The notes below the pieces were generated by a model that was not told where the DNA came from, ran no database searches, and worked only from the letters and a program-made list of their open reading frames with translations. A stretch of 63,165 nucleotides of DNA from Octopus bimaculoides. Taxonomy: Eukaryota. The stretch is from the NCBI RefSeq assembly GCF_001194135.2, contig NC_068986.1, positions 83,015,518 to 83,078,682 of the forward strand, read 5' to 3'. The position numbers were made by a program, and so were the translations under genes. Shown here piece after piece: positions 2,976 to 48,594 of the stretch; the stretch's first letter is position 1; each line of letters starts with the position of its first letter.

Positions 2976-5555
2976 GTAGTACTGGATAAATTGCAAAAAT
3001 AACTCTAACAGTTCAAATACTAAGAAATAAGCATACTCAATTTGATTTATACCAAATAATATAGGAAAATGAATGGGTTATTTCCCTTGACTGTTAAAAT
3101 ATGAAATAGCTTTTTTCCAATGATAACTTTATATATTTACTGTATCCTAGAACTGTTCATATAATTCACTTATTTACATTCATTATTACTGATTTGAAAC
3201 AAATCTTTGTTGACTATTGTTTTTACATGTAAACAGCGAGTTATTGTGTTGGGCCTTTTTACTCAAAAAAATAATTCATTTGGTAGATTAAGGTTTTCAA
3301 ATGTTACTCTGCTTATCAACTTTATTCTGCACTAACGATCAAATAGCTTCTTTTATCTTCAGCCATAGATTCATATCTTGTCAGAATAAAGCAGTGAAAC
3401 CGACTTAAAGTATGTAGATGGGTAGGTTGTTGTTCCATCTAATGTGACTCTGTTCAAAAGGCTGTAATCTTGTTTGGTAGTAAACCCGGTATGAAGAAAT
3501 ACATGGAACAAATGTGATAACTTTAAATACGTTTATTGTGGTTACATGTATATATACACAAGCTGAATGAAAGTGGTTGATGGACATTTATTCATATATC
3601 TACATGCATCTGCATGGGTTGAATGTTAGCTGTTAAGCTTGGTGAGAAGCTCATGAACTGCGATGCATTAGAACCAGTGCAGTGTGTTGGTGCTGTGTAG
3701 ATGTTGTTGACAACGTTGGTGAGAGACATGAGTGGTGGCGACGAAGATGGAGGTCGCTGCAATGTGGTCAGTAGTTAAACTTAGAAGGTCTGAAACCAAC
3801 AGACGTTGAGATTAGAAGGAAGTCAGCTTTTATAGCTGCTGGTAGGCTCATATGCTGATTTGGAACAGACTGTCTCATGTGACTTATTTGAAGGCTGCCA
3901 TTGGTTGGGTTGCATATTAGCGCATGATAAAGTAAGAGACAAATTGCACCAATACCAACCAATCAGAATGGTAGACACAATGGGGTCCAAAACAGCGCCC
4001 AAAGGTTAGCTGTTACCTGCTAAGTTTGTATGTCTGTTATATAATTGAGAGAGGAAGTTCACTAGAGTTTGCTACAAGTACATAGCCTCGAAGTACCATA
4101 GAGTTTGGACATACAGGGTGCATTGGTTAGTTGTAATAGGGCAGTGATCAGATGATACAATAGGTGTGGAGACAGCATATAGTGAGTTGAAACCAAAAGT
4201 CCAAGCAGTTTTTGTTTTTCTATTTTCAAAGAGAAAAGAAACATAAATATGAAAGAGAACAGCAAACAAGCCCCACACTTTCATGAGAGAAAGAAAAGTT
4301 AGGGAGAACAGGTCTATATTAAAGTTTAAAGAAGAGGCAAAAGGGGCATTTTTAACATATCCAAACACAAAGTGTCTGCATATTTTTTGCAAGTAGGTTG
4401 ACAGAAGGACCACTTCTATAAGACTCTTCTATCAAACTGTCGAACCCATGCCAGAATGGAAGGACATTAAATAATGACAATTCATCTCTTCTCAGTGATG
4501 AGAGCTATGTGACATTAGGAAAGCAATCCTACAGCTGATCAGTTAATACTGAAGCTGTACTGGTGATCACTAAGGAGGGAATGAGACTCAAAATACTGAG
4601 GCTGATCAGTATGTTTCAATTGTTTCTGTGGTGGTGGTGGTGNNNNNNNNNNNNNNNNNNNNNNNNNNNNNNNNNNNNNNNNNNNNNGGGGGGGGGGGAA
4701 CAACGATTTAAGCCACCTTGAGTAATCCTTTGAGTAATCAAAGGGTTTCTTTCACCCAGGTCTCTTTGATCAGAGGGATGGCAAAGCCAATATGTCTCAG
4801 AGATACAACCAAGCGAATAGATTACTAAGAAAGTCAGTAATGCCAGAGTCAAAAGCATCAATAGAATGTGTTCCATTTGTAAGTTTGATTAATAGCAGTT
4901 GACTTACTGAATTCGTACACCTTTGTAAACAGGTATTGCTTTTGTGCTTTCAGGGTGTCAATCCATCCTATACATGTCAAGCTGAAGCCCTAGGGTGATG
5001 TTACTTTAGTCCACAACAGTTTGATTATAAAACAGATGATATTGGTTTACATGTTTACCAGTAACAAATCAAACAATGGTGTTAACTTCCTTGGTAACCT
5101 ATGTACCTGGTTGTATCTCTCAGATATGTTTTTGATCCTCATATCACAGGACTCTGGAAAACCTTTTACTCTCTGCTTCTCTTCTATCAAAATACACACA
5201 GTGCCTGGTTCTTTTTGTAGTTATTTCATATTGCATGTTCTACATATAAAATCAAAGGAGAAAAATATAAGAATATATCATCTTTATTTCAATTTTGGAT
5301 TATTTACAGGAATATCCATAAAATGTGATGAGGTAAAATTTAAAGATTTTGAGCCTCAGAAATGTGATGAAAAAGACTGAGTATAATAACAAAAATGCCC
5401 AAACAAAAAGAGAGTTTGTGAGAATGGATAATGACACAAATTTATCACCTACTTTGTATTAAGCTGAAGGTTACAATGATATTTACAAATTAATATCCAA
5501 ATTACCATAAAGTCATGAAGAAATCATGATGTAAATAGAAGAAATTATAAAATTA

Positions 5556-6801
5556 TCAAGTCATTAAGAATGAAATGTCTGATTTTCTTATGCACAAAGT
5601 TTGACAGTCATTAATTCTAATGTTTCATCCTGACAATTCTTTGTTTTACAACATTGAAGAGTTACATCATCACTTTTTGAAATGCAATTCATGGTGTCTG
5701 ATTATATTGTAAGTTTTCTCTTGTAATTCAATTTTTGTGAACCCATGGATAGATAAAAAATTCATGTTGTTTATGAATATGAGTTCTGTCGTGGAACCAA
5801 TGCATCCCAGACAGCTGGAAACACCAATGAGGTGTTTGGTGAAGATGTGGCGAATGAGTGCACTGTACGTTGATGGTTTGAGAAGTTCCGGTCTGGTGAC
5901 TTTACTCTTGAAAATCAGCCCCATGGTAGACCTGAGATCAAGGTGGATAATGATGAGCTGGAAACTGTAGTGGAAGTGGATACATCTCAAACTACGTGTG
6001 AATTAGCAGCAAGGTTTGATGCTTCAATTCCAACTGTATTGGTCTATCTGAAACAAATCGGCTAGGTAAAGAAGCTGGACAAGTGGGTACCACATGAACT
6101 GAACGAGCATCAAATGACACATCATCTTGAAACTTGCTGTTCTTTGCTGTGACAGCATAAAAAAAGAACCATTTTGGCATCGTATTGTTATGTGTGATGA
6201 AAAATGGATTCGTTTCAACAAAGCAAGCATTCTGCATAGTGGTTGGATAGAGACGAAGTGCCTAAACACGATCCAAAAAAGAATATTCACCAAAAAAAGC
6301 TAATGGTGTCTATTTGGTGGTCCAGCACTGGTGTCATCCACTACAGCTTCACGAGACCTAGTGAAATGATGAGTGAACTTGCAATTAAGCAATTGAAATT
6401 TGTCAATAGAGACAGGCCAATTCTCTTGCAAGACAATGCTTGACTACATGTTGCACAAAGAACACTACTTAAGTTACAGGAACTGAACTTGGAAGTACTC
6501 TGTCATCCACCATATTCACCAGAACTTGCACCAACAGACTATCATGTTTTCCAGGCATTACACAACATATTGTGAGGTAAAAACTTCAAATCTGAAGAAG
6601 ATGCAAAAACAGCCTTTCATGATTTCATAACCTCTTGCTCTCCAGAATTCTTCACTGCTGGCATAAATAAGCTACTGATAAAATGGAAAAATTGTGTTGA
6701 TAATTCAGGTGCATAGTTTAATTAATTGCATTGCCTTTTGTTGAGATAAAGTAAAATATACTTTCAGTTCAAAATCAGACATTTCATTCTTAATGACCTG
6801 A
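5556..6801 (+). mobile_element. Mariner (DD34D) transposon, full length, transposase disabled
   Basis: TIRs tca(a/g)gtcattaagaatgaaatgtctgatttt at both ends with TA target duplication. Motifs WFEKFRSGDF, WVPHEL, CDEKW and YSPELAPTDYH carry in-frame stops. Confidence 0.95.
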
Positions 6802-7343
6802 TATATAACTATTTACCAAGAGGATCCTTTTCAAGATGAAGTACATACATAATAAATTTAAATCAGAATATACATAAGATACATGAAAGAATGTATATAA
6901 AATTCAGAATACATATAAAACACATATGCCATTAGGCAATGTTGAAATATGCTGAAATAAATGCACTAAATATGTTTTGTGCATTCATTGTAACACAATA
7001 ACTGTACAGTGAAATCATTTCCCATTTATGAGAATACATTTCTCAGCTATTTAGCCACACAGTCAAATCAACAGTATCATTCCTCCTTTCTGGAAATATG
7101 TTAGTTTGTAATGTGTGAATATACTGAAATAATGCTTTTATTTAAAATATCACTGGTAAGTTATTTCACCCAATTTAGATATATAAAATAAAATATTGGG
7201 AAGTTGTTCTTTCAGTGTTAAAACTTCTTTTTTCTGTGAATACATTTAAAAATTATATTTTTCTGATAGAATGAATTTTGATAGTGGTGTGTTAACTCTT
7301 CTATATGAAGAAATAAATGTATAGCTAAATTAACGAGTTTTTA

Positions 7344-7696
<353 letters not shown>

Positions 7697-8290
7697 CTAT
7701 CCTGTATGAATATGTTTGTGAGTAGTTAAGATTATCACTTCAGAAAGAGATTTATTATGGATATCACTTTGATATAATTTATCTAGTGTATGAATACGTT
7801 TTGGGGTAGTTACATGAAGATTCATTTTCTTTTGTGCATGAATTTGTCTGTGGCGAGTTAAGATAGAACTTTGAGAGAAAGACTTACCACAGATATCACA
7901 GTGATATGGCTTCTCTCCAGTATGAATATGCCTGTGAGTAATTAAATTTATTCTAGCAGAGAATGATTTACTACATATGTCACAGTGATGTGGTTTCTCT
8001 CCTGTATGAATACGTATGTGAGTAATTAAGCTAGATCTTTGAGAGAAGGATTTACCACAGATATCACAATGATATGGCTTCTCTCCTGTATGAACATGTT
8101 CATGGGTAGTTAGGTTACCTTTCAGGGAGAATGACTTTTTACAGATATTACAGTGGTATAAGGCCTTCCCTGTTACTTTCAGCGTCTCAGTAGGAAAATC
8201 AATACTTTTATACTGTGGTTTACAATTAATTCCATTTTCATATAGTGTATTTTCCATTCTTTTCCTTCTTTCACTACAATATATATTCAT
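7697..8290 (-). CDS. C2H2 zinc-finger protein (ZNF1), 197 aa: 4 intact fingers followed by degenerate fingers; alternative start at 8257
   Basis: The ORF has four C-x2-C-x12-H-x3-H motifs with TGEKP linkers. Its N-terminus MNIYCSERRKRMEN parallels ZNF3 [14 protein letters not shown]. Confidence 0.9.
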   Translation of the reverse strand: MNIYCSERRKRMENTLYENGINCKPQYKSIDFPTETLKVTGKALYHCNICKKSFSLKGNLTTHEHVHTGEKPYHCDICGKSFSQRSSLITHIRIHTGEKPHHCDICSKSFSARINLITHRHIHTGEKPYHCDICGKSFSQSSILTRHRQIHAQKKMNLHVTTPKRIHTLDKLYQSDIHNKSLSEVIILTTHKHIHTG

Positions 8291-20017: not shown

Positions 20018-22636
20018 TTAGTATATAAACTTAGACCCAAAGATGTCTAAGTGGCCAAAAGCATTTGTCCCTCCACTGTTCCCACTGCCATCATAGTCAA
20101 AGTCATCTTTTTTCTTTTTTGTGCTGTCTTCATCTTTGACCTGTGATAATTTTTCCTTGAAATACCTTTCATTGTCTTTTGAAATTTCATTTTGAAATCT
20201 TTCTGGAATTACAGATTTTTCAAGCAGTTCTTCTAGATTACAGCATAACTCACCTGAATCTAATAGCTCTTTTGTTACACGTCTATATATAAAAAAGTAA
20301 GGAGTGTCACTTTTTGATGATTTAAGTGTATCTGAAAAATTATACTTTGTTTCTGTTACAGATTCATCATTAAAAATATACCAGTTGTCTTTTAGTAAAT
20401 TACTCAAGTTTGTATAATGTTCATTAATTAAACACGAATGTCGGGATAGCAATATACAATGTCCGGAATCACTGTTATAACCAGAATGAATAACAACAGA
20501 ACACAGTACATAATTAATATCTTCCTCGACAACCAAACTCTCATCATTTGTAGTGAAACATTTTAAACATAATTCTTTTGGATAATTGACATAAGCCATA
20601 ATTTTAGACCGCTTTTTATTCTTTTTATTATAAGAAAATCTTGATAAAGTTAGATTTAAATATTCTGGAGCGTCTATGAGGAAAACTTGTCGAATTCCAT
20701 CACGATAATCATTACAGTTTGGACACTTAAATTGATTACTAACCTTCAATTCTTCCACTGTGAAGTAATTCTGTATTAAGTCTCGAATATCGAGTTTATC
20801 ATTTATATTTTTCTCTTCCTTCACCTCCTCCTCCTCATCATCATCATATGGTAATGCTAGGAGCAAAAACGAAAATCTTTCTTCGTATTTTGTTTCAGTT
20901 TGACATTTTAGACACCTTGTAGAGTTTCTGAGCTTACCAAAAAATTTTCTATCAATTAGCGTTCTTGATTTACTATCTACTATTTCGCATTTAGTTATCT
21001 CTCCCTTATTTTTATCACTCAAATCTGACTCTGTTTTCATGCTGTTTTTCTTTTCTTCCTCATCAAAAGCATTCAGAAGATGTGACAAAAACTCTGCACA
21101 GTCTTGCTGCTCATATTTTGCAAACCATGAAGGATTAGCGTTGCAATAGAATTCTGATGGGTAAAAAGAAGGCCGTTGGCTTGATAGTAGATAGGAGAAA
21201 ACTTCTTGTAGTTTGCTGATGATTCCACCAGGGGGCACTGGCATGCCTAATACCTCTTGTCTAAAATTATCCAACATAAAGAGCACCTGAATAGCTGAAT
21301 TCATATAACACGAGTTTTTCACATTGCACAATCCAGTTTTGCGTGTTAGAGTCTTCTTAATTTCAAGAGGAGGAACAGTAAAATTTTTGCAATTACTAGT
21401 ATTACATAATGCTGCAAGAGGTTTTACTTTATTTAATTGCAGTTCTTTGATTGAGAAACAAGTCTGTCTATATTTTATAAATGGTTCTTTAGAATGCCAA
21501 TATATTTCCAACTCCATATTGGCCAATAAGATTTCAATGCATGCTAAACCTGTGCTGCTTTTTTCCTCTGCTAATATTGGAATGATGTCAACCAACGACA
21601 TTATCATGTGAGAGGTACTATCAGGACTCATCTGTATCTTTGTATATATATGTACCAAGATCTTAGCTGCAGATTCTCTAGAAGCAATCGGTTTCAGCAT
21701 GTTGACTATGAAAACAATAGTCTCCTGAGCAATTTCTTTTAAAACTTCATCAAATCCTGCTGCTGCTAATTTTTCAAATATCCCAATTATCCATATATGT
21801 ACTCGTTGAGAAAATGGCCAATCCAGCCAATGTAAAATTTGATAAATTGTGTTGGAGATTCTAGGTTTATTAATTACATCAATATTAATTAAATCAATAA
21901 TTTCTTCTACTGATTTAACTGGTATTTGACTCAACGTTCCAAGACAGACAGAAGGACTGTTAAATGGCTGCGAAATTAAGGAAAACAGATAATGAACTGA
22001 ATTTTTCTTTGTGTCATCATTAGAATTATTAGGGTTACAATTTTCCCATAATTGAAATAAAATTTGTCCAGCTGTATTTATTGTTTTAACTTCTCGTAAA
22101 AAATTAACTCCTTGTTTTGGTGTTCTAGTAACATATAAAATATCAATAATCACACAACAGAAATCATATCGTTGATAAACAGGAACACATTTAGGCTGTT
22201 TTATCAATAAAGAAAAGATTATAGCTAAACACTGTAAATTACTGTTCTGTTTTAAAAATATTGTGATTAACTGCTGGAAATATTTCACTAATGATGCATA
22301 GCATTCAGTACCTTTTAAAATTTGTAATGATTTTTCGATGATAACAATGGCTGCTGTTGGATTTTGGTGTGAATTAATTAAGATATCATTCATTAAAACT
22401 TTGTTGAAGTATTTTTGAAATATCTCTTCATTGTTTCTTGCCCAATTTTCGTAAAGTCGAACACCAGATGTACATTGGAATGCAGTTTCTCCATCTAATG
22501 ACCATTTTACTGCAAGATTTAAAACTGGGACTGTGTCTTGTGCTGTTTTTGGTGATTTTAATATTTTTTGTAGAATTTTTTCTTTAAGGATATCTGGGTG
22601 ATTAGAAACAAACAGTCCTTGAAGAATTTGATCCAT
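20018..22636 (-). CDS. Ubiquitin carboxyl-terminal hydrolase of the USP35/USP38 family, 872 aa, CDS without introns
   Basis: Cys box GLCNVKNSCYMNS, QQDCAEFL, zinc-finger subdomain CLKC...CPNC, His box VVIHSGYNSDSGH and WYIFNDESV. It has a long helical N-terminal region and a Gly-rich C-terminal tail like USP35/38. USP35 versus USP38 cannot be resolved by eye. Confidence 0.92.
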   Translation of the reverse strand: MDQILQGLFVSNHPDILKEKILQKILKSPKTAQDTVPVLNLAVKWSLDGETAFQCTSGVRLYENWARNNEEIFQKYFNKVLMNDILINSHQNPTAAIVIIEKSLQILKGTECYASLVKYFQQLITIFLKQNSNLQCLAIIFSLLIKQPKCVPVYQRYDFCCVIIDILYVTRTPKQGVNFLREVKTINTAGQILFQLWENCNPNNSNDDTKKNSVHYLFSLISQPFNSPSVCLGTLSQIPVKSVEEIIDLINIDVINKPRISNTIYQILHWLDWPFSQRVHIWIIGIFEKLAAAGFDEVLKEIAQETIVFIVNMLKPIASRESAAKILVHIYTKIQMSPDSTSHMIMSLVDIIPILAEEKSSTGLACIEILLANMELEIYWHSKEPFIKYRQTCFSIKELQLNKVKPLAALCNTSNCKNFTVPPLEIKKTLTRKTGLCNVKNSCYMNSAIQVLFMLDNFRQEVLGMPVPPGGIISKLQEVFSYLLSSQRPSFYPSEFYCNANPSWFAKYEQQDCAEFLSHLLNAFDEEEKKNSMKTESDLSDKNKGEITKCEIVDSKSRTLIDRKFFGKLRNSTRCLKCQTETKYEERFSFLLLALPYDDDEEEEVKEEKNINDKLDIRDLIQNYFTVEELKVSNQFKCPNCNDYRDGIRQVFLIDAPEYLNLTLSRFSYNKKNKKRSKIMAYVNYPKELCLKCFTTNDESLVVEEDINYVLCSVVIHSGYNSDSGHCILLSRHSCLINEHYTNLSNLLKDNWYIFNDESVTETKYNFSDTLKSSKSDTPYFFIYRRVTKELLDSGELCCNLEELLEKSVIPERFQNEISKDNERYFKEKLSQVKDEDSTKKKKDDFDYDGSGNSGGTNAFGHLDIFGSKFIY

Positions 22637-22752
22637 GTTTTCGGTCAGAAAAATTTTATTCAGTAAACTTGGTAAATATCATCCATGAGATATTTTTATG
22701 TAACTGGAAAGCTGTTTCTCCATCTAATAATCATTTTACTCCAAGATATTGT

Positions 22753-22825
22753 TTTCAATATTATCTTATATTCTGAAATAGAGAAAAAGTATACAATGTA
22801 GAGGATATTTAAAAGTAGAAATGCA
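22753..22825 (-). promoter_or_regulatory. Candidate splice acceptor of the USP coding exon (exon starts at 22772), ZNF-type
   Basis: TTTTTCTCTATTTCAG|AATATA, lying 136 nt upstream of the USP ATG. Confidence 0.65.
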
Positions 22826-23429: not shown

Positions 23430-24686
23430 TGAGGTGGTACCAAGAGGTTCTCAGACAAGTTATATTTAATAAAAAATAACTTATTTACCTAAGTTTTAAC
23501 ATCATCTCTTTCAAAATAGTCACCTTGTATGGCAATACACCAGTCCCAGTGTTCCTGCCACTTTTGAAATCCAGCCTGGAAGTTATTTCTTATAAGTGAG
23601 TTGAGGACTTTCGGCGATTCACTCTGGATCTCCATAACAGTGTTAAAATGGTAGCCTTCGAGTTGCATTTTCCTCTTGGGGAAGACATGGGAGTCTGTAG
23701 GTGCTCAATCTGGTAAATAGGGTAGGTGCAGAAATGATACTATGTTGCTTATTTTTGGAGAGCTTAGTGACAGGGTACATTGTTGTCATGAAGAATCCAA
23801 TTCTTCGTGCTCCACAGATCCAGTTGCTTTCGCCGAATATCCTCCCTCAAACACTTCAAAACGTTGCAGTAGAACTCTCTATCAATGGTCTGGCCCTGGA
23901 GGGTGAATTCTCAATGCACAATACCATAGATGTCAAAAAAAATGAGCATGCTCTTGATTGAGCTGTGGCTCTGTCATGCCTTCTTCAGTCAGGGAGATGA
24001 AGGGTTCTTCCACTGTGATGACTGCTGCTTCATCTCAGAATTGTACCCATAGACCCAACTCCTGTCACTGGTGATGGTCCTCGACATGAAGGGCGGGTCA
24101 TCAGTGGCACACTGACAGAAATCTTGACTGATGCAATGTTCTATCTGCTTGGTGGTCAGCAGGCAGAGGATAAACTTGGCAGAGACATGCCACATGTTCA
24201 ATTTAGACATTAAGATTGCCTGCACAGACCCATATGACCAACCAACAACATCAGCAATGTTGTCGACTGTCCTATGTTGATCTTCATGCACAAGCTGATA
24301 AATTTTCTCCACATTTCTGGGGGTGATGCTCATGGAGGGTCTTCCAGATCGCTTGTCATCTTCTAGGGATGTTCTGCTTTTCAAGTGCCTATGCCATTGC
24401 TTCGTCGCTATATGCTTAATGAAGTATGTTCAATGCCTCTGTAGCAGAGTTTCCAAGTTTAATGCAAAATTTCACATTGGCTCTTTGTCCCAACTTCCTG
24501 TCCATCATAAAATCAGACTACAGCATACACATGATCACAAAAACACAAATTGTGAAGTAAATACAGCAATGTCACACAACAATTGCCTCATAAGGTCACC
24601 GCTAGTTCTCACTGTGCATGCAACCACGTACTGCCATCTGTTGGTGCACTATAGAACTAGTCTGGGAACTTTCTGTTACCACCTTG
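23430..24686 (-). mobile_element. Mariner transposon, full length, disabled
   Basis: TIRs (t/c)(g/a)aggtggta(c/a)c at both ends with a TA flank on the left. ORF SLEDDKRSGRP...ITSDRSWVYGYNSEMKQQSSQW carries the DD34D N-terminal catalytic motif. Confidence 0.9.
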
Positions 24687-25214: not shown

Positions 25215-26147
25215 ATAAAGAGAACAGCTATGTTTGCAGCTTCAAATACGCATTGGAAGCTGCCCCTGCACCAAAATATACTGTTGTCATCGATGCTGAC
25301 AAGAAGCCACCTGGCTCCCATGCAGGCCGTTTTAACGCACTCACATGCAATGAAATTGCTGTGCTTCTTCATAGAGAACACCACAACAAATGGGACATTA
25401 TCCTTCAGTGTAGGGACAAGATCCTGGAAAGGATCAGTGAGACCCACGGGTCCTTCGACGCAATGCAATACTTTCTTCTTTTTCTAGATGGTACTAATGG
25501 ATATCACTTCGGAATTCTTTTGTGCAACAGCAACAAAACTGTCTCCTGCAAGCAATTCTATGTTTACCATTGTATAGTCCACGATGCCTGCTTCAATCAC
25601 CTCCACCATACAAGAAACCTTTTCCAACAATTTACTGTGGACATGTGCATGAAAATGGAGTCCGAAAGATTCTGCTACATTAAGCAAAACCAAAAGCACT
25701 TGTGTTTGGAGAACTACATTCACCTTTGAGATGGTATTAACACTGATGTCGCTCCCAAAAACCTTGGAAAAGTGTGCATATTTCTGTCAACATTTACAGG
25801 AAACCCTCACTACATGTACAAATGCACAGAGGACGCCATGACATACGTGTGCCACTGTGGCAGACCCAACCTCTTCATCACTTTCACCTGCAACTTCAAG
25901 TAGACAGAAATCAGCAGTGAATTATTCCCAGGGCAAAAGGCCAAAGACAGACACGACCTTCTGGCCAGAATCTTCAACAGAAGTTGACAAAACTAATGGA
26001 ACTCTTTCAAAAAGATAAGGTGTTTGGAGATGTTAGGTGCCACATGTACTCCGTTGAGTGGCAAAAGGGAGGCCTGTCACACGCTCATACTCATTTGGCT
26101 CTCAACGAAAATCAGCGCCACTGACATTGACAGTATTATATCTGCAG
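25215..26147 (+). mobile_element. Helitron Rep (HUH endonuclease) fragment, disabled
   Basis: HAGRFNA..CNEIAV, RNLFQQFTVDM..KMESERF.YIKQNQK.L, GRPNLFITFTCN, VEWQKGGLSHAH (the VEWQKRGLPHAH motif) and DIDSIISA. Confidence 0.92.
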
Positions 26148-27850
26148 ACCATGCAGAACATCTGGTGGCAGAGGAAAGCAGAGGAGATGCAAAACTATGT
26201 GGACCAATGAGACTTGTGCCATTTTTATGCCACAATCAAGATCTTTGGCCTCACAAGGTCGTCAGTGGGTGGCCTGAAGAACACAGCTGGCTCTGCGATA
26301 ACTGACACCCAGGGGAGTCTCGATTGCCGGAAGTCCCATTTCGGGAGCTTACTTAACAACCTCTCACACACTCTTGGCAATCTCTTCCAAATCACCCCAC
26401 AGCTCCCCATTTGCCATTGGATGTCCCTGTTGCCCTCAGCCCATGAGTTCAACAAGGCATTCAAGTGCATGAATCCGGGCAGAGCTCCAAGACCAGACAA
26501 CATCCCATTTGAGTTTTTCACACATGGAGGACCTGAGCTGAGAAATCATCTGATGCTCCTTATCCTCAAGATCTGGAAAAGCAAGACCCTCCCAAACAAC
26601 TTCCACAAGGCAGACCAAGAGGATTGCAACAACTATGGGTGTATCTCACTCCTGAGTACTGCAAGCAAGATCTTTGCTTGTATCCTACTCAACCGCCTCC
26701 TTATCCTTGCAGAAGATGTCCTCCCTGAGTCCCAGTGTGGTTTTCGACCTTCTCGAGGCACAATCGACATGATCTTCTGTGCCTGCCAACTTCAGAAGTG
26801 TCAAAAACAACAACAGCCTGCAATGTTCATCTTCTGGGATCTAAAGAAAGCCTTTGACAAGGTCCCCCATCCTGCAATGTGGGCCATCCTTGCTCGGTTT
26901 GGATGTCTGCAAGACTTCATTGCCCTGGTCCGCTCCCTTCACGACGGCAAGGTGGGTAGGGTATGCCATCAAAATACCCTCACAGACCCATTTCCCATCA
27001 CTGGGTGTCTTAAGCAAGGATGTGTCTTGGCACCAATCTGTTTCTCTTTGTACAATGCCACCATGTTCAACGAAATCCCACTGGACTCACCTTCCATCAG
27101 CATGTGTTATAGCTTGGATGACGGACTCTTCAATCTCGCATGTCTCCACGCAAAGATGAGTACCTCCACCATCTCAGTCTATGAGATGCAGTATGCCGAC
27201 AACAATGCCACCCCAAGCAAGACCATAAATGACCGATCTTTATAACAAGGTTTATGAACACTTTGGCGTGCAGGTAAACATATTAAAAAATAAGACCCTG
27301 ATCCAACCTGCACCAGGCTAGAACAGTCCACCCACAAACATTAGCATCAAGAGCTAACAACGAGGTTCTTCACCACACCTCTCTACCAAGCATTGAAGCC
27401 ACCATTCTTCACCATCACTTCCGCTGGGCAGGTCATGTCCAGCATATGGAGCCCTTTCGACTCCCAAGGACCATGCTCTATGGAGAACTTGCAATTGGAA
27501 CAAGACCCAGAGGAGGCCCAAAATTCTGTTTTAAAGACCAGCTCAAACAGACCTTGGCTCAAACTAACATCCAGCCATCCTCATGGGAACAGACTGCCAT
27601 GGATAGGACAGCCTGAAGGACTATCATCCACAAGTGAGCCAGCTCCTTCGAGCAGAACAGACGACCGAATGAAGTAAAATGCAGGAAAGGAAAGGAGCGT
27701 CTTCAACATCCTCGACCTGCACCGACCATCCTGTGCAAATTCTGCCTACGACTCTTTCACCACCAATTTGGACTCCAAAGTCACATTTGGCACAAACATC
27801 TGCCAAGGAGACTGGATAGAAACTGACGAACCCAATGCTTGGATAGAAGC
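26148..27850 (+). mobile_element. RTE (BovB-like) LINE reverse transcriptase fragment
   Basis: APRPDNIP, NYGCISLL, LPESQCGFRPSRGTIDM, DLKKAFD, KQGCVLAP and YAD motifs, with frameshifts downstream. Confidence 0.93.
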
Positions 27851-30318: not shown

Positions 30319-30486
30319 AGTGCGTTGGTGCATTTGGGGAGATGTGCTGCAAACAACAGCTAAATCGCCGTTAACTTTTTCCCATTGTGAAACCATATTC
30401 AACGCCCGTATTTATGAATTTTTCTCTCACCATGATACAGGGGATCTTTTTTAAAACCTTTTTTTTTTGCTCAAACGAAAATTAAT

Positions 30487-30924
30487 NNNNNNNNNNNNNN
30501 NNNNNNNNNNNNNNNNNNNNNNNNNNNNNNNNNNNNNNNNNNNNNNNNNNNNNNNNNNNNNNNNNNNNNNNNNNNNNNNNNNNNNNNNNNNNNNNNNNNN
30601 NNNNNNNNNNNNNNNNNNNNNNNNNNNNNNNNNNNNNNNNNNNNNNNNNNNNNNNNNNNNNNNNNNNNNNNNNNNNNNNNNNNNNNNNNNNNNNNNNNNN
30701 NNNNNNNNNNNNNNNNNNNNNNNNNNNNNNNNNNNNNNNNNNNNNNNNNNNNNNNNNNNNNNNNNNNNNNNNNNNNNNNNNNNNNNNNNNNNNNNNNNNN
30801 NNNNNNNNNNNNNNNNNNNNNNNNNNNNNNNNNNNNNNNNNNNNNNNNNNNNNNNNNNNNNNNNNNNNNNNNNNNNNNNNNNNNNNNNNNNNNNNNNNNN
30901 NNNNNNNNNNNNNNNNNNNNNNNN
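30487..30924. other. Assembly gap (other gaps: 4643-4687, 38897-38906, 56110-56209)
   Basis: Runs of N. Confidence 1.
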
Positions 30925-31949
30925 TGAACACCTGAGATTCTAACTGAGCAAAACAAAACTTGCCCCTACATCCCCTTTGTGACAACATTAAAAGCAATTT
31001 ACTTGGAAAAATTATTTCTTTCAATTTACACAAATCATCAGCATTTTTATGACTTGCATTTTTTGCATTTTTCCAAATTCATTTAATCTTAACACGATTA
31101 TACACTATATAACATTGTGTATGGGGTTCACGATTAAGACTCCATCTGCATATAAAACAAACAAAAAAAGCCTATGGAATGGATTTTGCAGGCATGATGT
31201 AGATTCAATCCTAGATAGCTAAATTTAAATTAACACTTTAACAGCAGTTTACATTTGCCAGATGCCCGCTACTTGATGCTTCTAACCTCTTATAAGCCAC
31301 CAAAAGCCAGATTTAAGATAACAAGTACCACCAATGAAATCTGTTGTTCTTAACGATATGTCTATCCTTCTGGATAGTTATAAAAACAAGAACCCCCAAG
31401 CAAAAGTCAGTCAGTGAGTGACAACTCGAGTGAGAGACAGCTACCATCAGTTAGTAAAACAGACTGCTAGAATCATGGTCACAAGCAGGCAGCTACTATA
31501 GACAAATGGTCATAAGTTTATGATCAGCAACTATGAGACCCAACCTCCCTCAACTCTGCAACTCTCACTGGCTCACTTTATTTTCTCTTACAACATCGCT
31601 CTATTTCTATCTGTAATTACTACTACACAATCACAAGCTATACAAGGAAAATCTAAGATATCTACCTCTACTTCGCATGCTTTTGGATTCTATCACCTGC
31701 CTGTTGAGGCAAGGTACATACAATGTAATGGTAAATAAATATTTTCTTCACAACTTCAATCACTGTTCTTTCATCTTTACATAATGGCAATCAATGAAGA
31801 ACCAATGCTTAGAAACTGATTACAACTCCAACATACCATATTAATGTTTGTAAGAATGACCGTGTGAACCAAAAGGAGAAATGGTGACGAATGAAAAAAC
31901 AGGCTCCTTTTTATGGCGATTTACCCTAATCTTGCTTATTTGCTTATGA

Positions 31950-33480
31950 AAGCCCATCAAAGGTGATGACAGCATTGATCCACAACATTCATCCTCCTCT
32001 GCCTCCAGCACATTGTTTCTCATGGGAGTGGAGATGACTGACAAGACCAATACAAGATAGGCAGATCCCATGGCACTGAGGGCACTGCAAGTGACACTGA
32101 ACAACAGTCAGAGGGGGTTGATGATGTCTCCTCCTCTCTTCTGTGTTTGATTTCAAAGCACTCAACTCCAGTCAGGGACTCCACTCCATTGGAAGGGACA
32201 CCACATAAAATGCTTGAGAGGATCATGAACACAAAGTTTTGGATGTCCAGTCTCAGTCTCACTGAAAAGGAACATCTTAGGGAGCCAGTTACCTAAATTT
32301 TTGATTTACATGGCCCACTCAGCAGAGAAGACAGTGAAGGATGCAAGCCTCAATGCTGTAGATACTAGCCCTCAGGAGGATTTTTGTATGAGACACCTTA
32401 TCCTTCCGCATGAGACTGAGGATACTTTAGAGCGATCTGAAATGGAACATTTCCAGTTGTCTAATCTGGTACTGATAAAGGGTGCATCATTCACACCCTT
32501 ACAGGAGGGTGATACACAGACAGCTCAATAAATGGAGATCTTTGTACTTGCTCTGAAAGACTCATTTGCTGAGTCTCCTGAATGATGCAGAGGCCAAGTT
32601 GATCCAATGAAGTATCTTATTATTAAGGAGTTCACCTACAATAGAGAAACATTATCAATAAGAATACGACTGAGAAGGATATGAGTATGGATAGGCTGAT
32701 TCACTTGAAGACCAAGTTGAGAATAGGCACTGTTCATTGAGTTTGTCATGGGTTGAAGAGAGGAAGAGGTATAAGATAGTGTAGCTGAATTGTCAGCATA
32801 CTGAATCTTGTACACTGTGGTTGAGAGAATTTTTGATGTGGCTTTCAGGTAGCAAATGTTAAAGATGCCACCATAGAAGTACCAGATACAAATTCCATCT
32901 TTGGTGAACAGTTTCATAGAAATAACAGTTACAGCCACCAGGTAAATGTTAAACCATATATGGGTAAGGATGCATCTTTCTATTACTGTCACCTGAACAT
33001 CAGTGGGTTCCAAGGCTTCACCACCAAGTGTCACTCTCACTTGCATACCATCATGAAACTTCTGGACAATCAAGAGAATCAGTGGTGGACAGCCAAACAT
33101 CTGAAGCAGGCACCGTAACATAGGATGGATGACTGTGTCAAATGCCTTTGTTATATCAATGAAGGCATAACATACGTCTCTCTGCTGTTCATGACACTTT
33201 TGAAGAGGACAAGCCACAAATATCATGTCAGAAGTGCTTCTTTCTGTTCGAAGTTCACACAGGGACTCAGGCATAAACAGGTTGACAAAATGAAATAGAA
33301 GATGTCAGAGGAGAATATGTGAGAGGATAAGAGAGATTCTTCTGCAGCTGCTGCACTCTGCATGCTGTTCCTTGTACTTGTAGATTGTGACAATATTGGA
33401 GTGCTTCCACCTGTCAGGTATAGTCTTCCCCTGCCAACAGAGAAGAAACAAAGAGTGAAGATGGGATAGGAGATGAGGCC
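31950..33480 (-). mobile_element. RTE LINE, RT to 3' end, degenerate
   Basis: PESLCELRTERSTSDM, DITKAFD and QYADN, plus a 3' CPQCHGICLSCIGLVSH motif. Confidence 0.85.
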
Positions 33481-35196: not shown

Positions 35197-36342
35197 ATGG
35201 AAGACGTTAATCACTTGGACACTTTAAACAATATAGATTCAGTTACACAGACACACAGCAATGAGAAACCTTTACGTAGTGAAACATTTACTAAACAAAG
35301 ATCATTACACGGAAATGTTAGTGAATATCGTTGTGAGATATGTAGGAAAACATTCTCCTCGGAACAAGAACTCTTCACACACAAAGAAATACACAATAAG
35401 GAAAAGCCATACCAATGTGAAATATGTGGAAAATATTTTGTCAATAACAGTTGTTTGACGAGGCATAAAAGAATACATACTGGAGAAAAACCTTACTATT
35501 GTGAAATATGTGGGGAATCTTTTATTCAGAATTCGTGTCTTGTTGCCCACAAACGTAGTCATACTGGAGAAAATCCTTTTCAATGTGAAATATGCGGCAA
35601 ATCGTTTCTGGATAATAGTAAATTAACAACACATAAAAGGATACACACTGGAGAGAAACCGTTTCACTGTGACGTGTGTGGAAAATCTTTTACTCAGAAT
35701 TCTCATCTTGTGGTTCATAAAATAATACACACTGGAGAAAAACTTTATCAATGCGAAATATGTGGGAAATCATTTGTCTCTAACAGTAACTTGACAATGC
35801 ACAAAATAATACACACGGGGGAAAAACCCTTCCACTGTGAAATATGCGGGGCATCTTTCACTCAGAATTCTCATCTTGTTATTCACATACGTAGTCACAC
35901 TGGCGAGAAGCTGTTTCACTGTGAAATTTGTGGGAAATCGTTTATAAATAACAATCACTTAAAAAGGCATAAAAGAATACATACAGGAGAAAAACCGTAC
36001 CCCTGTGAAATCTGTGGAAAATCTTTTGTCGATAATAGTGATTTAACAAAACACAAACGAATACACACTGGAGAAAAGCCGTTCAACTGTGAAATATGCA
36101 GGAAATCCTTCACTAATAATTCGAAACTTGTTATCCACAAACGTAGTCACACTGGAGAAAAACCTTTCCGCTGTGAAATATGCGGGAAATCTTTCATTGA
36201 AAATTTTAAGCTTACAATCCACAAACGTAGCCACACCGGAGAAAAACCCTACCACTGTAAAATGTGTGAGAAATCTTTTGTATCTAATGATTACTTAAAA
36301 AGGCACGAACAAATGCACATTGGTAGGAAAACTTTAAATTGA
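35197..36342 (+). CDS. C2H2 zinc-finger protein (ZNF2), 381 aa, 12 tandem fingers of CEIC type
   Basis: Twelve C2H2 motifs with TGEKP-type linkers. A candidate 5' intron spans 35028-35169 (ATT|GTGAGT ... TTTCTCAG). Confidence 0.95.
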   Translation: MEDVNHLDTLNNIDSVTQTHSNEKPLRSETFTKQRSLHGNVSEYRCEICRKTFSSEQELFTHKEIHNKEKPYQCEICGKYFVNNSCLTRHKRIHTGEKPYYCEICGESFIQNSCLVAHKRSHTGENPFQCEICGKSFLDNSKLTTHKRIHTGEKPFHCDVCGKSFTQNSHLVVHKIIHTGEKLYQCEICGKSFVSNSNLTMHKIIHTGEKPFHCEICGASFTQNSHLVIHIRSHTGEKLFHCEICGKSFINNNHLKRHKRIHTGEKPYPCEICGKSFVDNSDLTKHKRIHTGEKPFNCEICRKSFTNNSKLVIHKRSHTGEKPFRCEICGKSFIENFKLTIHKRSHTGEKPYHCKMCEKSFVSNDYLKRHEQMHIGRKTLN

Positions 36343-46944: not shown

Positions 46945-48594
46945 ATGTGTATATATTGCATTAAGAAAAGAAAAATTATGGAAAATATATCATATGAGAA
47001 CAAGGTTAAATGCAAAACAGATTCTAAAAAAATCAATTCTGATGAGCTGCTGAAAGAGAGAGCAAAAACATCATTCCTCTGCAATAGCTGTGGTAAATCA
47101 TTCTCTCAAAAATGTAATCTTAATATTCACAAACGTATTCATACGGGAGAAAAACCATTTCACTGTGATTTCTGTGGTAAATCATTCTCTCAAATAAATC
47201 ACTTAACTAAACATAAACGTATTCATACGGGGGAAAAGCCATATAGTTGTAATTTCTGTGCTAAGTCATTTTATGGAAGTGGTGAACTAACTAAACATGA
47301 ACGTATTCATACAGGAGAGAGGCCATATCACTGTGATATCTGTGGCAGATCATTCTCTGTAAATGATCACTTAACTAAACACAAACGTATTCATACAGGG
47401 GAGAAGCCCTTTCACTGTGATATCTGTGGTAAAGCATTCTCTTGCAATGGCGATATACCCATACACAAACGCTCTCATACAGGAGAGAAGCCATATGATT
47501 GTGATATGTGTGGTAAATCATTTACTACAAAAGGTCACTTGACAACTCATAAACGCTCTCATACAGGTGAGAAACCATATCACTGTGATGTCTGTGGTAA
47601 ATCATTCATTCAAAACTGTCAGTTGATTAGACACACACGCATTCATACAGGAGAGAAGCCTTATCACTGTGATACCTGTGGTAAATCATTCTCTGAAAAT
47701 GCCCATTTAATTAATCACAAACGTATTCATACAGGAGAGAAGCCATATCACTGTCATATCTGCAATAAGTCATTTTCACGAAATGATCATTTCACTCAAC
47801 ACAAACGTATTCATACAGGAGAAAAACCATATCACTGTGATATCTGCGGTAAATCATTCTCTGTAAGTTTTCGGTTAAAAATTCACACACGTATTCATAC
47901 AGGAGAGCAGCCATATCACTGTGATATCTGTGGTAAATCCTTCTCTGAAAAAGGTGACTTAACTAAACACAAACGCATTCACACAGGAGAAACCCCATTT
48001 CAGTGTGACATCTGTGGTAAGGCATTTTCTAGAAATGCTAATTTAACCACTCACAAGCGTGTTCATACTGGTGAGAAACCATATCACTGTGATATCTGTG
48101 GTAAATCATTCTCTCATGGAAATGTCTTAATTGCACACAAATACATTCACACAGGAGAGAAACCATATCATTGTGATGTCTGTGGTAAATCATTTTCTCA
48201 AGCAAGTCACTTAAGTAAGCACAAACATGTTCATACAGGTGAGAAGCCATATCATTGTGACATCTGTGGTAAATCATTCTCTGTTGGAAGTGCAGTAACT
48301 GGACACAAACGTACTCACACAGGAGAAAAACCATATTGTTGTGATATCTGTGGAAAGTCATTCTCTCAAACAAGTCATTTAACTGCTCACAGGCGTGTTC
48401 ATACTGGAGAGAAACCATATCACTGTGATGTCTGTGGTAAATCATTCTCTGTAAATGATTCCTTAACAACTCACAAACGTATTCATACAGGAGAGAAGCC
48501 TTATCACTGTGATATCTGTAGTAAATCATTCTCTCAAATAAACCACTTGACTAGACACAGATTTATCCATACAAGAGATGAAGCATCGCTGTAA
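46945..48594 (+). CDS. C2H2 zinc-finger protein (ZNF3), 549 aa, 18 tandem fingers of CDIC type; alternative start at 46978
   Basis: Eighteen C2H2 motifs with HTGEKPY linkers in one uninterrupted ORF. Confidence 0.95.

Follow-up and report, generated by a model that had tools for sequence, protein, structure and literature searches.

We analysed 63,165 nucleotides of the Octopus bimaculoides genome (RefSeq assembly GCF_001194135.2, contig NC_068986.1, positions 83,015,518 to 83,078,682 of the forward strand), hereafter the window. We concentrated on one of its genes, annotated as a USP38-like ubiquitin-specific protease (USP), in which the segment following the catalytic histidine differs from that of all the non-octopod relatives examined. 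The gene and its relevant parts lie on the minus strand at these window positions:

20018..22636, minus strand: coding sequence of the predicted octopod USP35/38 orthologue ('ubiquitin carboxyl-terminal hydrolase 38-like'), a single exon with an uninterrupted open reading frame (ORF) of 872 amino acids (aa) plus stop
21527..22504, minus strand: Usp38-like N-terminal domain (aa 45-370; PF21246, E 1.9e-36; N-domain of human USP38, 4rxx, E 1.4e-21)
20285..21337, minus strand: USP/UCH catalytic domain (aa 434-784; PF00443, E 3.2e-38; PDB 5txk, human USP35, E 2.9e-43)
21299..21322, minus strand: Cys box V439-N446 (VKNSCYMN), with the catalytic C443 at 21310-21308 and the changes G440K and T442S
20435..20464, minus strand: His box G725-S734 (GHCILLSRHS), with the catalytic H726 at 20461-20459
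20456..20458, minus strand: codon TGT (C727), an in-frame A>G transition (TAT>TGT) at the tyrosine of the GHY motif
20455, minus strand: putative insertion of one nucleotide (A) opening the shifted segment, from the Needleman-Wunsch alignment with Lottia
20447..20454, minus strand: eight putatively ancestral bases, TATTGCTA (the TAY TGY TA of Tyr-Cys-Tyr), which with the inserted A now read ATA TTG CTA (I728 L729 L730)
between 20447 and 20446, minus strand: putative deletion of one nucleotide, restoring the frame
20366..20371, minus strand: N756-D757 in W-Y-I-F-N-D-E, the third triad residue, aligned with wylfNDtrv of USP35 (5txk) and kept
22637..22797, minus strand: about 160 nucleotides upstream of the ATG, presumably 5' untranslated region or promoter, conserved between Octopus and Argonauta (blastn)

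This is a functional single-exon gene. We take it for the octopod orthologue of the one USP35/USP38 gene of invertebrates, because the USP35-like and USP38-like vertebrate representatives (P0015 and P0017) group together in a neighbour-joining (NJ) tree. The protein has the catalytic domain and fold of the subfamily, its Usp38-like N-terminal domain, its catalytic triad and its zinc ribbon, and lacks both subfamily signatures, G-H-Y in the His box and G-N-[T/S]-C-Y/F in the Cys box. The blastn match with Argonauta hians (locus L001, positions 4855-7625, against window 22797-20018; 79% identity) stops exactly at the stop codon and reaches 160 nucleotides 5' of the start.

The reverse complement of window positions 20464..20441 reads GGA CAT TGT ATA TTG CTA TCC CGA and encodes GHCILLSR, i.e. 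G725 H726 C727 I728 L729 L730 S731 R732. An earlier sequence-only reading of the window had pointed to this coding sequence at 20441-20461, which correspond exactly to H726-R732; it is indeed there, on the minus strand, which that reading had left unstated. It had also described the site as a non-canonical His box of a USP35/38-type enzyme, giving GHYYCYAR for USP35 and GHYYSYAR for USP38 as the usual forms. Both are correct: the human USP35 sequence SGHYYCYARE (5txk) aligns with SGHCILLSRH of the window (HMMER), and the vertebrate USP38-type representative P0017 reads GHYYSYARN. Finally, the canonical Y-C-Y is present one base out of frame, as the reading had noticed, the +1 frame being ..D I V Y C Y P D...

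We then compared this His box with the rest of the family. We searched 1.84 billion representatives exhaustively with HMMER and retrieved 128 proteins at E<=1e-30. The His box starts with GHY in all of the approximately 130 non-octopod relatives from which it could be extracted, mostly as GHYY[C/S/T][Y/F]x(R)HS, confirming that the octopod motif departs from the canonical one. Among 37 aligned orthologues, the column after the catalytic histidine is 100% Tyr and the next one 97% Tyr; octopods have Cys in the former and Ile or Thr in the latter. By this comparison, GHC(I/T)LL is a derived state unique to octopods. One member of the retrieved cluster, P0164 (loci L009 and L010), was discarded as spurious and unrelated to USPs, and a look-up of the gene record for the Nucella sequence P0019 found none.

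In the NJ tree, octopods are sister to a clade formed by P0003, P0152 and the genomic contig L008, and the pair is nested within molluscs. This sister clade, whose position rests on the NJ tree and on shared features, reads GHYYCFGR(H/Q)S. Its sequences, the partial sequence P0037 (73% identical to P0003) and P0050, which goes with L008, come from the Logan/ENA assemblies SRR27666070, SRR27666064, SRR21372852 and ERZ21867824, and presumably represent non-octopod cephalopods. The octopod stem branch is long: the Octopus protein shares 37% identity with P0003 and 31% with Lottia, and P0003 shares 35% with Lottia. In the outgroup contig L008, at about 8113-8115, two tblastn segments of the last large USP exon, meeting at aa 570/571, are one base out of frame with each other. 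Either an indel error in the long reads or a very short feature that escaped recognition would account for this; the His box is unaffected.

The rewritten motif is present in all octopods for which we found a sequence. The window protein is 98% identical to that of O. sinensis (XP_029637918.1) and 74% identical to its Argonauta hians orthologue, and its 90% cluster also includes an O. vulgaris protein and a third Octopus-like sequence. The codons following the catalytic histidine are:

window and O. sinensis: TGT ATA TTG CTA TCC CGA (CILLSR)
third Octopus-like species (L011-L013, three independent run assemblies): TGT ATA TTG CTG TCC (CILLS)
Argonauta hians: TGT ACA TTA CTA TCA CAG (CTLLSQ, in GHCTLLSQ)

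All five octopod sequences carry the complete rewritten state, and neither indel is found in any outgroup. Within GHC-x-LL, Argonauta differs from Octopus only by I>T and synonymous changes. The ratio of nonsynonymous to synonymous divergence between the window and Argonauta (dN/dS, Nei-Gojobori) is 0.17 for the whole gene, with dS at 0.76, and 0.08 over the 60 codons around the His box. Hence, the rewritten His box is fixed in every octopod available, is older than the split between Octopus and Argonauta, and is maintained in its present frame by purifying selection. Because it is fixed in at least five octopod assemblies, with dN/dS of 0.08-0.17, we regard it as an old change of the octopod stem that yielded a functional sequence.

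These data bear on the two outcomes between which the sequence-only reading had left the choice. A pair of assembly errors would imply that two compensating mistakes conceal a true in-frame TAT TAT TGC TAT (TATTATTGCTAT). We found no support for this, beyond the assembly gap at about 30.5 kb, which shows that the contig is imperfect. Yet the same 24 nucleotides of the His box occur in the independent O. sinensis assembly, the O. vulgaris annotation gives the same protein motif, the third species has TGT ATA TTG CTG in each of its three separate run assemblies, and the differences seen in Argonauta (TGT ACA TTA CTA) are synonymous or conservative in the present frame. Five independent octopod data sets thus agree, including one with only 74% protein identity, and we rejected both a sequencing artefact, which we hold to be extremely improbable, and a private allele. 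For the same reasons, the other outcome, a double-indel allele that changes or kills activity, was wrong as worded: the state is fixed and selectively constrained.

How did the motif arise? The His-box codons of the distant mollusc Lottia are GGA CAT TAT TAT TGC TAC TCC AGA CAT TCA, to be compared with GGA CAT TGT ATA TTG CTA TCC CGA CAT TCG in Octopus. An unbiased Needleman-Wunsch alignment of both DNA sequences places GGACATTAT-TATTGCTACTCC over GGACATTGTATATTGCTA-TCC in three of the four scoring schemes tried. In these three schemes, an exact block of 8 nucleotides lies between two gaps of 1 nucleotide, and in-frame matches restart immediately on both sides. Relative to Lottia, the gap pair amounts to one substitution (TAT>TGT), one inserted A, the 8-nucleotide block and one deleted base. 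The outcome is also constrained at the protein level: one base followed by TAY TGY TA translates to [I/V/L]-L-L for every combination of synonymous codons, and Octopus has I-L-L. The sequence-only reading had proposed a compensated +1/-1 frameshift, with an insertion directly after the histidine, giving V-Y-C-Y, and a loss four codons later. This placement would require three substitutions for Y>V, whereas an insertion after the first tyrosine codon requires only one (TAT>TGT). The shift is accordingly shorter than it had described, only 8 nucleotides or three codons (I-L-L).

We compared the number of events implied by a frameshift with the number implied by ordinary in-frame substitution. 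From a Y-Y-C-Y ancestor, the Octopus sequence requires at least nine in-frame substitutions, or two indels and one substitution; from a Y-Y-C-F ancestor, at least eight substitutions, or two indels and two substitutions. For Argonauta, the corresponding figures are at least nine substitutions against two indels and three substitutions (Y-Y-C-Y), and at least eight against two indels and four (Y-Y-C-F). On these counts, a compensated +1/-1 frameshift would be the most parsimonious origin of the octopod His box. This core of the earlier proposal is supported by these counts and by the recovery of the gap pair against Lottia; the history itself is only reconstructed from present-day sequences.

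Similarity this short can arise by chance, so we estimated how often. The motif TAYTGYTA occurs once in the 2,619 nucleotides of the coding sequence, at the His box, against a background of 26 per 126,330 positions on both strands of the window (approximately 2e-4 per position). The probability that a random tripeptide drawn from the composition of the gene is frameshift-compatible is 0.0044 and, given I-L-L, frameshift-compatible codons are expected with p = 0.05 under the codon usage of the gene. When only the His-box site is tested, the chance probability is approximately 0.002. An empirical scan of four coding sequences retrieved an off-frame tripeptide identical to the family consensus in 4 of 11,323 other tests (3.5e-4 per test). 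We also estimated at about 0.36 the probability that the Octopus lineage would keep all eight bases since its split from Argonauta.

The main competing explanation is a stepwise series of in-frame substitutions from Y-Y-C-Y/F to C-I/T-L-L on a fast stem branch, for example Y>C, Y>N>T/I, C>F>L and Y>F>L, by drift or selection, the off-frame Y-C-Y being a coincidence of AT-rich codons. Several observations favour it over a frameshift. The gene has diverged to 37% identity with the sister clade, and 12 conserved tripeptide windows, in approximately six segments, have been fully replaced in the octopod lineage. Five of these segments show no off-frame trace, so wholesale substitution does occur in this gene, and once the 12 windows are corrected for, the chance probability rises to approximately 0.02 gene-wide. 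The sister clade already has Phe at the fourth position, one step from Leu. The gap pair is recovered at the DNA level only against Lottia and is lost against the closest outgroups, which differ from it synonymously (TAC TAC TGT TTT). A shift starting from their Y-C-F/TGT state would produce I-L-F, so that an ancestral TGC or Tyr must be assumed. The off-frame reading of Argonauta is V-H-Y-Y and not Y-C-Y. One of the four chance matches of the empirical scan, ALY at residues 451-453, is in the Cys box of this very gene. Furthermore, the strand is buried, a setting in which hydrophobic residues generally fit well, as do Ile or Thr at the second position. A score computed by hand with BLOSUM62 over the three residues places the shifted path approximately 26 units above the in-frame path. 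Because this gain is below two default FASTX-type frameshift penalties, the alignment score alone cannot settle the history of so short a segment.

Against stepwise substitution, at least eight to nine changes would have to accumulate within 12 bases of the motif that the family conserves best, and two columns that are 97-100% Tyr would have to pass through radical intermediates. The result would also have to fall, by chance, among the 0.44% of possible tripeptides expected from a frameshift and within the compatible 5% of codon choices, with perfect in-frame conservation restarting on both sides. We consider this explanation a real contender, if clearly less probable than its rival.

Frameshifting mutations that compensate each other in pairs (pairs of compensatory frameshifting mutations, pCFM) are known to occur in evolution (PMC8935012), and are considered to matter for proteins chiefly where conservation is poor. 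A survey of approximately 36,000 vertebrate and insect genes retained six high-confidence cases after filtering, all in less conserved regions: RAB36, ARHGAP6, NCR3LG1, RASSF4, SPATA24 and Wds, with spans of 7-99 nucleotides (PMC8935012). The small number of candidates and their location make the prior for a frameshift low, although a retrogene on a fast branch, as discussed below, raises it. By the standards applied to such pairs, the octopod site has both changes on the same branch, no species with a single indel, several independent data sets and off-frame similarity beyond chance.

Taxa branching from the octopod stem, such as vampyromorphs and cirrates, would weigh heavily on this question, and their absence counts against a frameshift: word-indexed searches returned only O. 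sinensis and Argonauta, and the exhaustive search a single octopod cluster. Because no taxon that we found breaks the stem branch, the ancestral codons and intermediate states are unobserved. The sequence-only reading had reasoned that orthologues sharing GHCILL through gradual substitution would speak against an indel history. Octopods do share a GHCILL-type state, which is not decisive between the two histories for the same reason. Taken together, we favour a frameshift origin of GHC(I/T)LL and regard it as reasonably probable. We go no further because a stem intermediate is missing and because other segments of this fast lineage were replaced leaving no off-frame trace.

The ALY match deserves a brief description, since it shows what false positives of this test look like. 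It involves V451-L452-F453 (CAG GTG CTC TTT ATG, window 21281-21289, minus strand), whose +2 reading GCT CTT TAT gives A-L-Y, the family consensus being QALYM. We judged it probably a chance match because the in-frame V-L-F is already a conservative match.

Three further explanations were rejected. To read the hidden motif by programmed frameshifting, the ribosome would have to shift twice, in opposite directions, within 12 nucleotides, and the off-frame motif is not conserved (YCC in the species of P0162, VHYY in Argonauta). RNA editing could not restore the tyrosine, as A-to-I editing cannot convert TGT to TAT. Both were set aside by reasoning, editing by reasoning alone. A micro-inversion is contradicted by the reverse complement of TATTATTGCTAT, which on inspection is unlike the observed sequence. 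Coleoids are heavy RNA editors, and the Y>C change at C727 (TAT>TGT) is a recoding of the A-to-I editing type; one may speculate that it originated as a hard-wired edit.

The branch on which the His box changed also saw a reorganisation of the gene. The coding sequence is uninterrupted in the genomic DNA of both Octopus and Argonauta. In Lottia, Pinctada and the sister-clade contig L008, it has introns at matching positions, of which at least five are shared: after approximately aa 310, 395, 460 and 495 (P0003 numbering), and one in the C-terminal part. Hence, the octopod gene has lost all ancestral coding introns. Retrogenes are classically recognised by the simultaneous loss of every coding intron, and we consider it likely, from this comparison of gene structures, that a retrogene replaced the multi-exon gene in octopods. 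No canonical second copy was found among octopod proteins in word-indexed or cluster-collapsed searches, in which the octopus genomes themselves were not included. No poly(A) tract follows the stop codon, and no target-site duplication is visible at the gene. The missing poly(A) and the end of homology at the stop codon are uninformative, because both are expected of an old event.

An intron-less gene with a broken signature could also be a decaying retropseudogene, or a dead pseudo-enzyme, either on its way to loss or kept for a non-catalytic role in binding ubiquitin or as a scaffold. The family does not vary at the GHY tyrosine, whose equivalent in USP7, Tyr465, lines the channel of the ubiquitin tail and donates hydrogen bonds (PMC12566277). 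Residues of the other active-site loop have changed as well. The usual G-N-T-C, whose Gly (440) and Thr (442) are found in 95% and 97% of the family, respectively, is K-N-S-C in Octopus and Argonauta, where the oxyanion Asn441 and the catalytic cysteine are kept. Yet the ORF of 872 codons is undisrupted in five species, and a dN/dS of 0.17 with a dS of 0.76 excludes neutral decay; a pseudogene is thereby rejected. For a dead enzyme, the retention of the catalytic residues is unexpected: Cys443, His726 and Asn756/Asp757 are invariant across octopods and their sister clade, as are the zinc-ribbon cysteines C575, C578, C638 and C641 (CxxC...CxxC). C443 aligns with the C450S position of 5txk, H726 with the His of sGHyy, and N756/D757 with wylfND. 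There is also a precedent in USP53 and USP54, long called inactive for lack of conserved residues beside the catalytic histidine, which proved to be active, linkage-specific deubiquitinases (DUBs) (PMC12037411). We therefore consider this whole class of explanations unlikely.

Structure prediction is consistent with a retained fold. An AlphaFold2 model of aa 426-795 (predicted local distance difference test, pLDDT, 73; predicted template modelling score, pTM, 0.77) has the USP35-ubiquitin complex 5txk as its best fold match, with a template modelling (TM) score of 0.79 on target. It places C727-S731 in the beta-strand following the catalytic histidine. From the retained residues, the octopod protein is most likely still a thiol protease, and the channel that receives the C-terminal tail of ubiquitin has most likely been remodelled, since the GHY tyrosine is lost and the Cys loop carries G440K. 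The loss of the tyrosine together with G440K and T442S suggests a co-adaptation of the two active-site loops. Other family columns at least 90% conserved have also changed in octopods (L644Y, Y636F, P692K and F341T). These changes and those of the Cys loop may be co-adaptations with the rewritten His box.

We propose the following history. In the octopod stem lineage, the His box would have passed from G-H-Y-Y-C-Y-(S/A)-R-H-S to G-H-C-I-L-L-S-R-H-S. A TAT>TGT transition would have turned the invariant tyrosine after the catalytic histidine into cysteine. The insertion of one base (A) after this TGT codon would then have caused the next eight ancestral bases, TAY-TGY-TA, to be read as ATA-yTG-yTA, i.e. 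Ile-Leu-Leu, and the loss of one base would have returned translation to the frame at Ser-Arg-His-Ser. The new hydrophobic segment would still form the beta-strand behind the catalytic histidine, and would have been tolerated, fixed and then kept by purifying selection. The hidden Y-C-Y would have no function of its own and would be a fossil decaying at sites that are synonymous in the present frame. Off-frame decay is visible as CTA>CTG in one Octopus-like species and as TTG>TTA, next to I>T, in Argonauta. An intact motif in Octopus, one synonymous change in the third species and one synonymous change plus I>T in Argonauta fit the neutral decay of such a fossil. The rewrite would have occurred on the same long branch as the loss of coding introns and the fast evolution of the protein, which suggests that constraint was relaxed or altered for a time. 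The full scenario is that a frameshift in the octopod ancestor, during the retrogene replacement or just after it, made a selectively maintained active-site strand with Cys in place of the GHY tyrosine and thereby changed the grip on the tail of ubiquitin or of a ubiquitin-like protein. We advance it tentatively, as somewhat less than an even bet.

The 63 kb in which the gene lies resemble octopus genomic DNA, with C2H2 zinc-finger genes, fragments of long interspersed nuclear element (LINE) reverse transcriptases and of Helitrons, microsatellites and an assembly gap. Clusters of C2H2 zinc-finger genes are typical of octopus genomes, and the window has three multi-finger ORFs, of which the two long ones have 11 and 17 matches, respectively, to the Pfam zinc-finger double-domain model:

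7697-8290, minus strand: C2H2 multi-finger ORF
35197-36342, plus strand: C2H2 multi-finger ORF (long)
46945-48594, plus strand: C2H2 multi-finger ORF (long)

Transposon debris lies at 23989-24384 (minus strand), 25253-25729 (plus), 26214-27245 (plus) and 32636-33274 (minus). It comprises a mariner-like transposase remnant, recognised by eye and with no Pfam match, a Helitron_like_N fragment and two LINE-type reverse-transcriptase fragments. The run of N that marks the assembly gap spans approximately 30480-30950. There are many (TA)n/(CA)n microsatellites, for example at 17.1-17.4 kb, at approximately 19.65 kb and at approximately 24.7 kb.

The annotation of the gene as USP38-like, the existence of compensated frameshifts and that of retrogene replacement are already known. 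We found no paper on the USP35/38 gene in cephalopods. What appears to be new is a selectively maintained USP35/38 orthologue that is devoid of the GHY motif and bears the signature of a compensated frameshift in the strand of its His box. If the proposed origin is true, a frameshift can rewrite a strand in the catalytic core of a cysteine protease and leave a working gene, which would be a natural example of a frameshift creating functional novelty within the catalytic core of an enzyme. The octopod protein is in any case a natural GHY-less USP with an intact triad, and offers a ready test of the roles of the invariant tyrosine and of the aromatic strand in catalysis and tail recognition. It is also a warning for annotation: a non-canonical motif in a lineage-specific retrogene need not signal an error or a pseudogene.

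Among known systems, the closest are human USP35 and USP38 (family C19; 5txk with ubiquitin, and 4rxx), which share with the octopod protein the two-domain architecture, the fold, the catalytic Cys, His and Asn-Asp, and the zinc ribbon. The octopod protein differs by GHC(I/T)LL instead of GHYYCY or GHYYSY, by K-N-S-C instead of G-N-T-C in the Cys loop, by a single-exon coding sequence, and by a sequence far more diverged than in other molluscs. USP53 and USP54 are alike in having a USP fold with the triad kept and without 'obligatory' residues next to the catalytic histidine (PMC12037411). Their deviation precedes the histidine, in the BL2 loop, and their activity has been demonstrated, whereas that of octopods affects the tyrosine and the strand after the histidine and is known from sequence alone. 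Regarding gene structure, the octopod gene resembles the retrogene replacement of SYCP1 in amphioxus, where one lineage has only a functional single-exon copy of an ancestrally multi-exon gene (PMC5803294); the loss of the parental copy and the relocation of the gene are only presumed in octopods. Finally, the octopod site resembles the published pCFM in having two indels of 1 nucleotide a few bases apart on one branch, with no intermediate, in several species and with radically different residues as a result, its span being 8 nucleotides. The published cases are recent and are recognised from unambiguous DNA alignments in less conserved genes or regions. In contrast, the octopod case can only be inferred statistically, would predate the split between Octopus and Argonauta with purifying selection ever since, and affects the most conserved catalytic motif of an enzyme family.

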